The position numbers and the translations under genes are program-made. From Paragordius varius (Eukaryota > Animalia > Nematomorpha): DNA of 64,000 nt. Shown here in pieces: positions 3,837 to 62,500 of the stretch. A model generated the notes under the pieces. It was not told the DNA's origin. It ran no database searches and saw only the letters and a program-made list of their open reading frames with translations. Position 1 is the first letter of the stretch. Each line of letters begins with the position of its first letter. The DNA is taken from the NCBI GenBank assembly GCA_964247055.1, contig OZ176050.1:2108001-2172000 (forward strand), given 5' to 3'.

Positions 3837-4871
3837 ATGGGTGATATGGATCCATGTGAGTGCTTTTCGCATATCTCCGCTATGCAAAGGCTTATAAATA
3901 TGGTACAATTAACTTTCCTATATCTATAGCTTAGAGATTCTCAAAACTACTGTACTGATCTAGAATGTCCAACCGAATGTAAATTTTTTAGAATATATTT
4001 TTAAATGAATATTAATATTAAAAATATTTATATTTATTATTTAGTACCTGGCTCAAATATAAATGGATCGGGGAATTTAAACCCTATAGACCAATTTATG
4101 CCTTTCTTAACAATGTTGTTGGGATTATTTGTTATGGCAGCTCTTATGTATAGATATAGACCAGCTTCATTGCGCGACTCTAAACCATCTAGAAATGATG
4201 ATAACTACGTAATACTGGTTATTTGAAAAATAATATTTTCTTAAATATTGATATCTTTAAAATTTTATTGTTGATAATGAAATAATAAAAATTTTAACGT
4301 AAAATTGAATAATATTATTACTCAAGCCTGAAATTAATCAAATTATTTATGAATTTATATATTTTTAAATATGCGTATTTGGCTCTTTTTTTCTCTCATT
4401 TTATTGGTCATTAAAATAAAGTTTTTTATTTTTTTTATTTTATTCGCACAGTTTCGTTGTAACATCAGTCATATATATATATATATATATATATATATAA
4501 ACAAATTTAATATTTCAGCTCTCCACAATAAAACTGTAAAACTCTTATTATAACCATTTATAAATTTCCAGAAAAGTAATATTTGTTTTATTGACTTACT
4601 GTATATATATTGTCATTTCATTATTTTGATAATTAAACTCTAATATTCATTGATTCTAAACATAAATAACGTCAAAAAAGATTTCAGTATAGTGAAAAAA
4701 TGAATTACTATTTCCAATAATACTTTCATAGAGAACTATTGAAATTTTACTATTTTGGTTTTTTTTCACTGGTCAGTATAAATTGATGAAATTTAAAATA
4801 TTATAGTAATATGCTCATAATTCTTTAAATTTAATTTTATGTAGGAACCCCCTGCTCCACCAATTCAATAA
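3837..4871 (+). CDS. SMIM14: Small integral membrane protein 14, 101 aa. Exons 3837-3902, 3930-3978, 4045-4208, 4845-4871
   Basis: Spliced product MGDMDPCECFSHISAMQRLINM|LRDSQNYCTDLEC...TM helix...YRYRPASLR...EPPAPPIQ* matches the SMIM14 family pattern (DPCEC..H..AM.RLIN.LR.SQ.YCTD.EC; C-terminal PPAPP). All junctions are GT-AG and in phase. Confidence 0.93.
4470..4498. repeat. (AT)n microsatellite
   Basis: Direct reading; similar tracts at about 9508-9529, 11454-11490 and 24679-24697. Confidence 0.9.
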
Positions 4872-5803
4872 CATTTCATCTGAAATGAACGGCTCATCAG
4901 CATTTTAAATCGCAGTCCATATTATATACACCACCATATATTTATATTTTTATGATTCTTAATAATTATATATTATAATGGGTCATTTTTTGAATGCATA
5001 TATATATGTATATTTAATTAATCATAAACATATATCTAATCACCAACCTTCACATTATTTTGGAAGGGTATGATTATATTATAAAGTAATAGCTAATATT
5101 TTATCTCCAAATTACTATTATTTATGCAATAAATATATTATTTAGCATCCAAACATATATTTTAATTTGTTTAAGTATAAAAATTGTGTGCATCAATTTT
5201 TAAATAAGGTTCTGATATTTTTATATAAAGAAGTACGGATTTTAAGTTGACGGCTTACGTAAAAAATCTTTGACTTTAATTCAAATAGGATATTTTATTG
5301 GCCCTAATGCTTTTCTGCGTATTGTATAAACCGTAAAATTTAGTTAATTTAAATTAAAATGTTTTGTTATATTAACAAATAAATATTAAAAAATCTCGTA
5401 AATTGTAATTATTTTAGACGATGCGTTTCCCCAATAACTCTAGTCGTTTATTTGTGTTAAATGGTTAATTCAACATCATTTTAACCTGTTGTGTCTGGCT
5501 ATTTGATTACCAAATAAATGATTTGTTTTTAAGTTGTGCTAGCAATAAGTATCATAACAATATTGAAAAACAAAGCAAAACATTATTGATAACATCCATT
5601 AGTAATAAAAACAGACAAAAAATCTAAAAAATAAATTATTATTTTTGTCTTTCCTGTTGTAGTTATTTCAAATACCAATACCAAACAAATAATAAAAATT
5701 TATTTATCAATTTTTACATAATTTGCTAAATAAATATAGTAAAAAACCCGATTTTTACAAAAAAAATTATTAAAAAATATTGCCCCATAACAAAATTAAA
5801 ATA

Positions 5804-59497: not shown

Positions 59498-59581
59498 CGC
59501 ATAAAAGCGTAGGCGTATGTTTTGTCATATGTTATACTGCGAATCTGATATTCATGCTGTTAGATATTTTAAAAATTTAAA
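59498..59581. promoter_or_regulatory. Putative bidirectional promoter and/or overlapping 5' UTRs of CNK and THNSL2
   Basis: Only 84 bp separate the two divergent start codons. Confidence 0.6.
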
Positions 59582-62500
59582 ATGCGCTTTTTGAGCACTC
59601 GTAATGTTTTAAAGAAAGAACTGTATACATTTGAAGATGTGTTATTTATGGGATATGCTCCAGATGGCGGTTTATTTATGCCGGAATACATGCCTAAAGT
59701 ATTGTTAAAATATGAAAAATTAGATTAATAGTGATACCTTAAAAATATGGAGAGATTATTCGTATACAGAAATGGCTTTCGAAATATTGAATCTTTTTAT
59801 ATCTGAAGGGGAGATATCTCGTGATACTTTAAAAAGTGATTTTAATACTATATTTTTAGATCTGCTCAATTTAGCTTTTAGCTCTTTTGATATTCCAGAA
59901 ATAATTAGATTAAATTATTTAATGGATGGTACCAATATTTTGGAATTATATCATGGGCCAACTATGGCGTTTAAAGATCTATCTATGTTGTGTATTGGTC
60001 AATTTATGAACTATTTTTTGAAACAAAAGCAGAAGCGTGTCATTATATTAGTGGGTATTCTTTTTTTAATCGTTAATGTTTTATACTTTAAAAATTTTAC
60101 TATTCTAAATTAAAGTGATTCTTCAGAATATTAATTTGCTTACAATTGTTACACCCACAGGTAAAAGATAACAAAATTATAATGTACGCATGATTGATTA
60201 CAATTATGATAATAATAACATATATTTTAATACCAATTATCTTCTTTATTATTTGAAATTATATTTAGTTTATTAAAAAATATATTTATGCTAACATTTA
60301 TAAATCCAATTTTACTAGTAACAAACATATTGACCCCACTCGTAATTATAGCATCATGACCCTTTGAGATGAATTCAAACCAAAAATTTACTTAGTTTAA
60401 TATCTAACACATCTTTTAAACATATAAATTACATTTTTTTAGTTTTGTCTCATTATGGGTGATTAAACACAAACAAGCTTTTGGGAAAGTTTATTTCTTA
60501 AACGAACATAGGTTAAATACTACGACTTTATTTTGGAACATGAAAAGTATAGCATCTATTTACGTGGATGCCTTAAATTAAAAAAACTTATTTTGAGGGG
60601 ATTCTGTAGGGGAAGGTCCACTTTGTAGTTAGATATTATATAGAGTATATCAATATGCTGTGAAATTTTCTTGCCATATAACAAATCGAAATATATCAAG
60701 CATCCGAGTTTTAGGGGACATTTTTTATGATATATCATCCATATATCCTTTAAAATTATACTTTATATGGCATAACGTTTGAAGAGTATATAATATTTAA
60801 CCTTTATTAACCTTTAAGAGTTTTTTCTCCCAACAAGGTCGTAACCCTTAATATATAATAATGTATCCACATTTTTTTATAAAAATATTATAATTGAAAA
60901 TTAGGAACTTCCGGAGACACTGGTGGAGCAGCTGTTCAAGCTTTCAAAGGATTGGAACAAATTGATTTGATAGTTTTGTATCCGAAAGGCGTTTGCACAA
61001 AAATACAAGAATTACATATGACATCCGTAACAGATAAAAATATTCACATAATTGAAGGTTAACAATAATGTTTAATTATAAATTATTGCTTTTACAAGAT
61101 TTTTATGTATTCATTTGCTTTTATATAACATAGTTGAGGGCAACTCGGATGAATTAGATGTACCCATTCAAAGTTGTTTCGAAGATGAGATATTAACGCA
61201 CAATGATAAATTCTCCCTTTGTTGTATCAACAGTATAAATATGGTAAGGGTTTTGGTTCAAATTGTACATCATGTTTTCGCTTTTGTGCGAATGTCCGCC
61301 ATGGATTGGAATATGTGCACTGTAAGATTTTGAATAATATAAAATATGGCAAAAATAGTATCTAGTAATTACTGCTTTTAATATTAATATTTTAGATATA
61401 TTAAGTTAAACCGTTTTTATATAGTTTTTGTGAAGGATTCATTTTTTACTTATCAGAATAAACCATGCGTGTCTGCAATCGAGTCTGATATGTACAGCTC
61501 AACTTATGGAGATTTGAATAAAATTGGCTCATGTCCTTCATCTTGCGATGAAAGTGTAAAGGATTTAAGCGTAAAGACCAAATATCTTTACTTATTTAAA
61601 CATTATCTTGAAAACTTTTAATATTAAATCATTTCTTAAAAAAAATTATTTCGATTCTATAGGATAAAACTGAGGATCATCACTGTGTAATAAAAAGAAC
61701 TGGTTCTTTAGATGATAATTTCATTGAATTGGTCATTCCTTCAGGGGCAGGGGGCAATGCAGCAGGTTTGTCTATTTTTTATATGGAATTTAGACTAATT
61801 TTGTAAGTACCGGCTTAAATTTTAATTTTACTAAATAATTTAAAATTAATTTATAGCAGGTTTACTATAATAAAGTAAAAAGTATAACTATAAGGCGTCC
61901 AGCCTGATAAGGTCACAAATATATTCATTTTATATAAGCTATATATATAAGATTAAGACAGTTTTATATAAAAAGTGCTTATACATTTCAAGTTGAAATG
62001 ATATTTTTATATTTAGTGTATTGATAAAAATCACCGTATATTTTTTATTTCACTTTTGCAAACCAATTAGGGGCATGTCTCGCAATACAAATGGGTATTC
62101 CCATAAAATTAACTTTGGCCGTCAATGTTAATGATATCATAAAGCGAACTTTGAACCGAGGAGATTTTTCAGCCCTGACACCTGTTAAACCAACTCTTTC
62201 AGTGTCGATGGATATATTGGTTTTGTAATTTAACATTTATATAAAAATATTTCAAAATTTTGAATTCTATTAAATTTTACTTGTTAATAGTGTCCATATA
62301 ATATGGAACGCATATTTTACATCTACAGTAAAGGCGATGCCGAATTGACAACCAAAATTATGAGAGACTTTAGTCAATACAAAAATGTTACCATACCACC
62401 TGACCTTTTAAATGAGGTATGCTATTTTTTAAAAAAAATAAAGAGTGTTTTAACCATTTGATTTAACTAAATTTTGATTTATTTAATTTTTTAGATGCAA

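Follow-up and report, generated by a model that had tools for sequence, protein, structure and literature searches.

Ciliates and chlorarachniophyte nucleomorphs have uniformly tiny introns, and the spliceosome can remove introns of 15–30 nucleotides (nt). These are single-class systems in unicellular eukaryotes, whose transcripts contain no long introns beside the tiny ones and whose introns follow no positional pattern. They differ in this from the locus examined here, a 64,000-nt stretch of the genome of the hairworm Paragordius varius (Nematomorpha; contig OZ176050.1, positions 2,108,001 to 2,172,000; hereafter the window). Five genes in the window (SMIM14, PDXDC1, an ankyrin-repeat gene, CNK and THNSL2) contain eight probable introns of 22–35 nt, hereafter micro-introns, which occupy the first one or two intron positions of their genes and are followed by ordinary introns of 62 nt or more.

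Among animals, a survey of 51 genomes found introns shorter than 30 base pairs (bp) only in myxobolid myxozoans and in Dicyema japonicum, in which short introns neighbour one another and carry minimal splice motifs (Hadjez et al. 2026, PMC13644364); Nematomorpha go unmentioned in the main text of that paper. The hairworm micro-introns resemble these introns in size (seven of the eight are shorter than 30 nt, at 22–27 nt), in their minimal motifs (GTa ... AG), in having short neighbours, in their conserved positions and in belonging to a parasitic animal. The genomic setting is different, however: ultra-short introns are the median class in the compact genomes of myxobolids and Dicyema, whereas here they form a minority class at gene starts, in repeat-rich sequence with introns of up to 5.6 kilobases (kb).

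The layout of the hairworm genes is closer to that described in flatworms. Opisthorchis felineus has three intron-length peaks (37, 90 and about 3000 bp), and its microintrons (<75 bp), which make up 34% of all introns, adjoin each other and lie preferentially at the 5′ ends of genes; five other flatworm genomes likewise contain a microintron class, whose average length varies, and the authors suggest that intron definition is preferred to exon definition (Ershov et al. 2019, PMC6530080). As in flukes, tapeworms and Macrostomum, the window has a separate short class beside introns of about a kilobase or longer, and, as in O. felineus, the short introns are adjacent to one another and enriched at 5′ ends. 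The second small peak of flatworms, at 90 bp, has its counterpart at about 62–92 nt here, and in both groups the short class is under-annotated by gene finders run with default minimum lengths. The two systems differ in that the short peak lies near 37 bp in flatworms and at 22–27 nt for seven of the eight micro-introns here (the eighth is 35 nt), in that the flatworm evidence is a genome-wide, RNA-supported annotation and ours comes from five genes, and in that Nematomorpha belong to Ecdysozoa, so that the origin is presumably independent. An earlier reading of the window from its sequence alone (the sequence-only reading) knew of no such pattern in an animal with large introns, but a two-class layout clustered at gene 5′ ends is already on record in flatworms, and what is new here is the phylum and the shorter size class.

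Intron status of the eight short segments

A plain scan of the window, which is 26–30% GC throughout, for GT...AG pieces joining two open frames yields hundreds of chance matches. Frame joining is therefore not evidence by itself in a window so rich in AT, and each junction was tested by homology for this reason. We rebuilt the gene models by listing all frame-keeping GT–AG joins between adjacent open frames and then checking them against orthologues. This procedure replaced a gene finder based on codon and Markov statistics, which gave 0.05–0.4 bits per codon in this AT-rich genome and was too weak. Twenty-three introns were placed exactly, comprising the eight micro-introns and 15 ordinary ones; these cover part of the more than 50 downstream introns to which the sequence-only reading had referred.

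The eight segments of 22–35 nt that had been proposed as introns do all start with GT and end with AG (Table 1). They contain 9–26% GC, compared to about 30–35% in the adjoining exons, and their composition is that of the small ordinary introns. Branch-point-like TTAAT, CTAAT or TTAAC sequences are present in most of them, as expected by chance in sequence this AT-rich. Retention would break the reading frame in seven of the eight cases. The exception is THNSL2 intron 2, which is open and in frame, and its status can therefore be decided by homology alone. Homology backs five of the eight, namely SMIM14 intron 1, both THNSL2 micro-introns, ankyrin intron 1 and, more weakly, CNK intron 1.

Table 1. 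Introns and intergenic spacer discussed in the text (window coordinates; lengths in nt unless noted; coding positions counted from the ATG).
Feature	Coordinates	Strand	Length	Remarks
SMIM14 intron 1	3903..3929	+	27	phase 0; 66 nt past ATG at 3837
SMIM14 intron 2	3979..4044	+	66	ordinary small class; coding position 115
PDXDC1 intron 3	14590..20176	-	5587	from junction listing
PDXDC1 intron 2	20649..20675	-	27	coding position 374; GT..AG; in-frame TAA
PDXDC1 intron 1	20961..20982	-	22	coding position 89; ATG at 21071; retention shifts frame
Ankyrin-repeat gene intron 1	25381..25415	+	35	coding position 128; ATG at 25253
Ankyrin-repeat gene intron 2	25532..27138	+	1607	sole frame-keeping join
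Ankyrin-repeat gene intron 3	27358..27887	+	530	sole frame-keeping join
HIPK first coding intron	41877..41993	-	117	about 1296 nt past likely ATG 43289; GTGAGT donor; frame-keeping join
CNK intron 3	58950..59011	-	62	shortest ordinary intron; coding position 440; sole frame-keeping join
CNK intron 2	59209..59230	-	22	phase 0; coding position 243; GT..AG
CNK intron 1	59401..59424	-	24	phase 1; coding position 73; ATG at 59497; in-frame TAA if retained
CNK/THNSL2 spacer	59498..59581	.	84 bp	between divergent start codons
THNSL2 intron 1	59699..59723	+	25	phase 0; coding position 117; ATG at 59582
THNSL2 intron 2	59836..59859	+	24	phase 1; coding position 229; open, in frame
THNSL2 introns 3–10	60055..63273	+	850, 76, 135, 92, 305, 71, 78, 639	
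SMIM14, lengths in order			27, 66	
PDXDC1, lengths in order			22, 27, 5587, ... 66, 68	
Ankyrin-repeat gene, lengths in order			35, 1607, 530	
CNK, lengths in order			24, 22, 62, 485, at least 59, 357, ...	
HIPK, lengths in order			117, ... 123	

Of 1.84 billion library proteins, P0001 is the one most closely related to the window's THNSL2 (69% identity over the query). It is encoded on chromosome OX940785.2 of the assembly GCA_954871325.2, which a preprint names as Gordionus sp. m RMFG-2023; Gordionus is the nearest annotated relative. The spliced THNSL2 model aligns without gaps across the junctions of introns 1 and 2 with P0001 and with nine other animal orthologues. Retention of intron 1 would shift the frame into stops, and the exons on its two sides match the Pfam profile Thr_synth_N at positions 1–36 and 38–72, each above the cut-off alone. 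At intron 2, an alignment with yeast threonine synthase (1kl7, the best solved structure) has a gap of exactly eight residues, and the eight residues that the segment encodes are present in none of the ten orthologues. Junction listings supplied the eight further introns of the gene, with the exon boundaries of the Gordionus orthologue and the multi-species alignment as checks.

Both THNSL2 micro-introns occupy sites that are also interrupted elsewhere. When P0001 was mapped to its locus (L001), introns of 43 and 105 nt were found at the two sites, in the same phases. The tuna orthologue P0014 (locus L002, Thunnus albacares assembly) has seven intron positions in common with the worm gene, and its 484-nt phase-1 intron interrupts the codon aligned with that of THNSL2 intron 2, in the same phase. 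Because the site is common to Gordionus and tuna, THNSL2 intron 2 is, on the evidence of these alignments, an ancient intron that shrank to 24 nt, and intron 1 is, by the same comparison, common at least to Gordionus.

In SMIM14, retention of intron 1 would place an in-frame TAG at its end. The spliced 38-residue peptide gives a continuous match to the Pfam family DUF2615 (profile positions 3–39, 58.3 bits), and the match of the unspliced read-through ends at the junction (29.4 bits); exon 3 continues the profile at positions 50–91. Intron 1 of the ankyrin-repeat gene, through which unspliced reading would run into a stop, splits a single Ank repeat. The spliced peptide covers the full profile (1–33, 42.1 bits), exon 2 by itself enters the profile at position 8, and a read-through from exon 1 into the intron matches nothing. 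For CNK intron 1, a structure search with the spliced peptide ranks the human CNKSR2 SAM domain (2ean) first, in an alignment that is ungapped over the junction but has a weak E value (0.0074); CNK proteins make up four of the top seven structure matches, and the peptide also matches SAM_2 at profile positions 2–49 (E = 0.003).

CNK intron 2 connects the exon for the SAM domain with the following open frame, which lies in another reading frame, and the length of the intron is identical in the DNA of a divergent relative. Structure-database searches returned nothing for CNK intron 2, nor for exon 3 as a CRIC domain. In PDXDC1, exon 2 must join an upstream ATG because its open frame has no methionine, and removal of intron 2 fuses open frames of 97 and 165 codons; no Pfam match spans the intron 2 junction. 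A second in-frame AG acceptor lies 9 nt from the first in this intron, and use of the AG at 20658 would give an 18-nt version and a protein with three residues gained or lost. The identity of the gene comes from PDXDC1-like_cen2 matches in three downstream exons. Pfam searches with single downstream exons of THNSL2, CNK and PDXDC1 otherwise gave mostly no match, and searches with a THNSL2 exon and a SMIM14 exon found no transcript-derived proteins of this species.

Contigs of four DNA runs (X1, X3–X5) cross all four CNK and THNSL2 micro-introns and the spacer between the two genes, without splice joints. These segments are thereby documented in the DNA of several individuals. One lineage, roughly 1–5% divergent, has a 4-nt insertion inside THNSL2 intron 1, and the sole indel listed in a CNK exon in the DNA contigs of these relatives is a 3-nt in-frame deletion. 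This difference fits non-coding sequence in the former case and coding sequence in the latter. Together, we interpret all eight segments as GT–AG spliceosomal introns that have probably shrunk to a lineage-specific minimum of about 22–35 nt.

Position and length of the two intron classes

All eight micro-introns lie at or before coding position 374, hold the first or second rank in their genes and form an unbroken run from intron 1, with two consecutive micro-introns in each of CNK, THNSL2 and PDXDC1. Most ordinary introns lie later, 13 out of 15 beyond coding position 400 (Fisher p = 9e-5 over the 23 placed introns), and the concentration of micro-introns in the first ranks within genes is significant by permutation (p = 2e-4). 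For CNK and THNSL2, the 84-bp spacer between the two start codons means that coding position approximates distance from the transcript start. Both promoters and both 5′ untranslated regions (UTRs) must fit inside the spacer or overlap it. The THNSL2 gene of Gordionus shows the same ordering, with short introns first (43 and 105 nt) and then introns of 211–4773 nt (4773, 211, 1413, 431, 1043, 643 and 763 nt in order).

The lengths of the placed introns fall into two classes, 22–35 nt and 62–5587 nt, and none of the 23 lies between 36 and 61 nt. The sequence-only reading had described downstream introns of 62 nt to 5.6 kb with the same gap, and this holds for the 15 that were placed exactly. Alternative splice sites that would give introns of 48–60 nt do exist, but the better-supported choices are 66, 78, at least 95 and 123 nt. 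The 66-nt late PDXDC1 intron, which like the 68-nt one lies near the 3′ part of the gene, is favoured over a 57-nt alternative by Pfam profile coordinates; Gordionus exon boundaries back the 78-nt choice over a shorter one in the region of THNSL2 introns 8 and 9; and the later HIPK intron is preferred at 123 nt rather than 57 nt for its better donor and less junk-like exon. SMIM14 intron 2 also has two frame-keeping GT–AG joins. The 66-nt version, with a GTAAAT donor, yields a 94-residue protein, and the 78-nt alternative loses the residues CPTE. The fifth CNK intron, of at least 59 nt, is presumably nearer 224 nt, the length that PDZ-domain homology favours.

We scanned all five gene spans, strand by strand, for frame-breaking candidates of 15–61 nt with coding-like flanks. 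The scan recovered five of the eight micro-introns (THNSL2 intron 2 was excluded by design, CNK intron 2 fell below the thresholds and SMIM14 was not scanned) and gave no credible frame-breaking micro-intron downstream in these spans. The claim that micro-introns are confined to the 5′ ends of genes thus stands for this window, where they are the first one or two introns and lie within 374 nt of the ATG; as a general rule it is probably too strong.

HIPK had been suggested to carry a 23- or 26-nt intron at its 5′ end. This suggestion did not survive, as a stop two codons before the donor of the candidate prevents it from joining any coding exon upstream; it could be at most a 5′-UTR intron. 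The first coding exon of HIPK is a 450-codon open frame, and the first coding intron behind it is of the ordinary class. In this gene, distance or place in an unbroken run, rather than rank, looks decisive.

Repeats, rejected candidates and other features of the window

Direct copies of one repeat family lie upstream of SMIM14 (1878–2443 and 3116–3682), the nearer one ending about 155 nt before the ATG, and the HIPK 5′ end is preceded by an inverted copy (43902–44289). Insertion of repeats near gene starts therefore does occur. The region 47181–49309 contains tandem copies about 1.1–1.2 kb apart that are 90–92% alike and share a repeated open frame beginning KMAFYGGAGKLKMRDDY, for which Pfam gave no match. 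Between the 5′ ends of PDXDC1 and the ankyrin-repeat gene there is a reverse-transcriptase fragment (RVT_1, E = 4e-4) at 21911–22420. Rfam identified no RNA family within the window.

Within PDXDC1, intron 3 contains an 86-nt inverted-repeat pair (16078–16163 and 17883–17968, 1.7 kb apart) that resembles the two termini of a DNA transposon. A further 98-nt inverted-repeat pair (82% complementary; 11491–11588 and 12471–12568) lies in the introns flanking the exon at about 11777–12016. These repeats could pair in the pre-mRNA and loop this exon out. A 52-nt PDXDC1 intron candidate was excluded, as the Pfam profile coordinates of its two exons abut, and several downstream micro-intron candidates in HIPK and PDXDC1 were rejected for joining a true exon to an off-frame open stretch. 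A candidate in CNK (56883–56911) was likewise rejected; it contains 41% GC, and the original frame continues through it as plausible coding sequence.

The orthologue check exposed an additional THNSL2 exon (61457–61570, 114 nt) that is specific to hairworms and had been missed by frame logic. Between the halves of the catalytic domain, the protein has an insertion with the motif IESDMYSSTY, which is common to Gordionus and absent from the nine other animal orthologues; the insertion forms a separate exon here and lies within a longer single exon in Gordionus (L001 13310–13726). In Gordionus, the 6 kb upstream of THNSL2 yielded no CNK N-terminus, and there is therefore no shared gene order to use.

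DNA runs X3–X5, whose records bear either the same organism label or a second one, align to 57700–63699 over conserved parts only, at 95–99% identity and with in-frame indels in exons. This divergence suggests a divergent population or a cryptic sister species among the public samples.

Explanations for the 5′ run and their meaning for hairworm genes

The reading we favour, and consider likely, is that the micro-introns are real but shrunken introns, at least one of them ancient, which lie in an unbroken run at the 5′ end and are recognised across the intron, and that later introns measure at least 62 nt, many of them with repeats, in a genome that is 27–28% GC and repeat-rich. The splicing logic behind this reading is what we infer from intron status, the positions of the introns, the gap in their lengths and the sites common to other species. 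An intron of 22–27 nt would be recognisable only across the intron itself, whereas an exon behind a long intron would have to be recognised across the exon. The intron downstream of such an exon would then need room for complexes at both the 5′ splice site and the branch site, perhaps 60 nt or more. Micro-introns might accordingly persist only upstream of the first long intron, with the cap as the mark of the first exon, and later introns would have been enlarged by repeat insertions. In its strictest form this becomes a positional rule, under which introns of 22–35 nt are permitted only in an unbroken run from the cap and lengths of 36–61 nt are forbidden, as a zone in which neither mode works. 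We hold this rule tentatively and think it rather unlikely; if it is true, this genome would offer a natural system for separating the two recognition modes, both of which would operate within one transcript.

Several observations count against this reading or limit it. The sample consists of five genes with micro-introns in one window, and the introns are known from DNA and homology, all four runs aligned to the locus being DNA. The argument for CNK intron 2 and both PDXDC1 micro-introns (three of the eight) is one of reading-frame logic, without homology support. Splice-site motifs are alike in the micro and ordinary classes, so there is no sequence mark of a second splicing mode. Ordinary introns of 66 and 1607 nt occur within the first 250 nt of coding sequence, and the 5′ zone is thus not purely micro. 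THNSL2 introns 8 and 9 (71 and 78 nt) have an exon between short introns, yet neither is of micro size, which exon definition does not predict. Micro-introns that are in frame and stop-free may also be hidden in poorly conserved exons of HIPK, CNK and PDXDC1.

The introns at the two THNSL2 sites measure 25 and 24 nt in the window but 43 and 105 nt in Gordionus, so that intron size changes gradually between species. This drift favours the main rival explanation, a purely evolutionary gradient in which no positional splicing rule exists and micro-introns can be spliced anywhere. The first few hundred bases of the gene would be kept free of transposons, through promoter-proximal selection or the retention of 5′ introns that boost expression, and a deletion bias would shrink the introns there, with repeats building up in later introns. 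The presence of repeat pairs in long introns and the equality of splice-site motifs between classes are both consistent with this explanation. However, eight downstream introns without apparent repeats stay at 62–92 nt, none at micro size, and no best-supported length falls between 35 and 62 nt. Moreover, promoters are not free of insertions, as repeat copies come within about 155 nt of the SMIM14 ATG on its upstream side and lie near the HIPK 5′ end. We therefore regard a purely evolutionary gradient as somewhat unlikely.

The sequence-only reading had itself suggested, as one possibility, a distinct splicing mode coupled to the cap or promoter, in which the branch-point distance is relaxed; the version weighed here has a fixed reach from the transcript start. 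Under such a mode one would expect what is seen in the position of every micro-intron (at most 374 nt from the ATG), in the 84-bp spacer between CNK and THNSL2 and in HIPK, in which the first coding intron lies 1.3 kb into the gene and is 117 nt long. Nevertheless, no motif separates the two classes and the unbroken-run rule accounts for the data equally well, and we consider a fixed reach from the cap improbable.

It is less probable again that the 5′ bias is an artefact of sampling or detection, with downstream micro-introns missed because they are in frame, stop-free or in poorly conserved exons. THNSL2 intron 2 shows that hidden in-frame micro-introns exist, and an orthologue check from end to end was made for THNSL2 only. 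In that gene, however, two of the ten introns are micro-introns, in the first two ranks, and there are no other unexplained insertions relative to the ten orthologues. The gene-span scan likewise gave no credible candidates downstream, and flatworms show a 5′ gradient genome-wide.

That the segments are not introns at all (but assembly errors, pseudogene lesions or products of unconventional processing, such as an IRE1-type XBP1 cut or ribosomal bypassing) might be entertained given that the evidence here is from DNA, but it is very improbable, as they are present and co-linear in the DNA contigs of four runs that include divergent relatives, all have GT..AG ends and the AT-richness of other introns, coincide in THNSL2 with annotated introns of Gordionus and tuna, affect five different intact conserved and unrelated genes and, judged from a composition of 9–26% GC, could not form G+C-rich paired stem-loops, whereas IRE1/XBP1-type introns have twin stem-loops with G+C-containing loop motifs and no GT–AG ends.

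On the reading we favour, hairworms would be a third animal lineage with introns shorter than 30 nt, and the first in a repeat-rich genome with kilobase introns. The 5′ clustering known from flatworms would be extended to an unrelated phylum and to a shorter size class, which would make a general mechanistic cause more plausible and open it to test. There would also be consequences for annotation. The genome paper on Gordionus montsenyensis reports 26.9% GC, 63.8% repeats and 71.6% BUSCO, and the word "intron" is absent from its main text. Software that does not allow very short introns, whether for alignment or for gene finding, would cut short the first exons of many genes or read them in the wrong frame, and such failures could depress measured completeness, as in the BUSCO value of Gordionus, and inflate the apparent loss of genes in hairworms.

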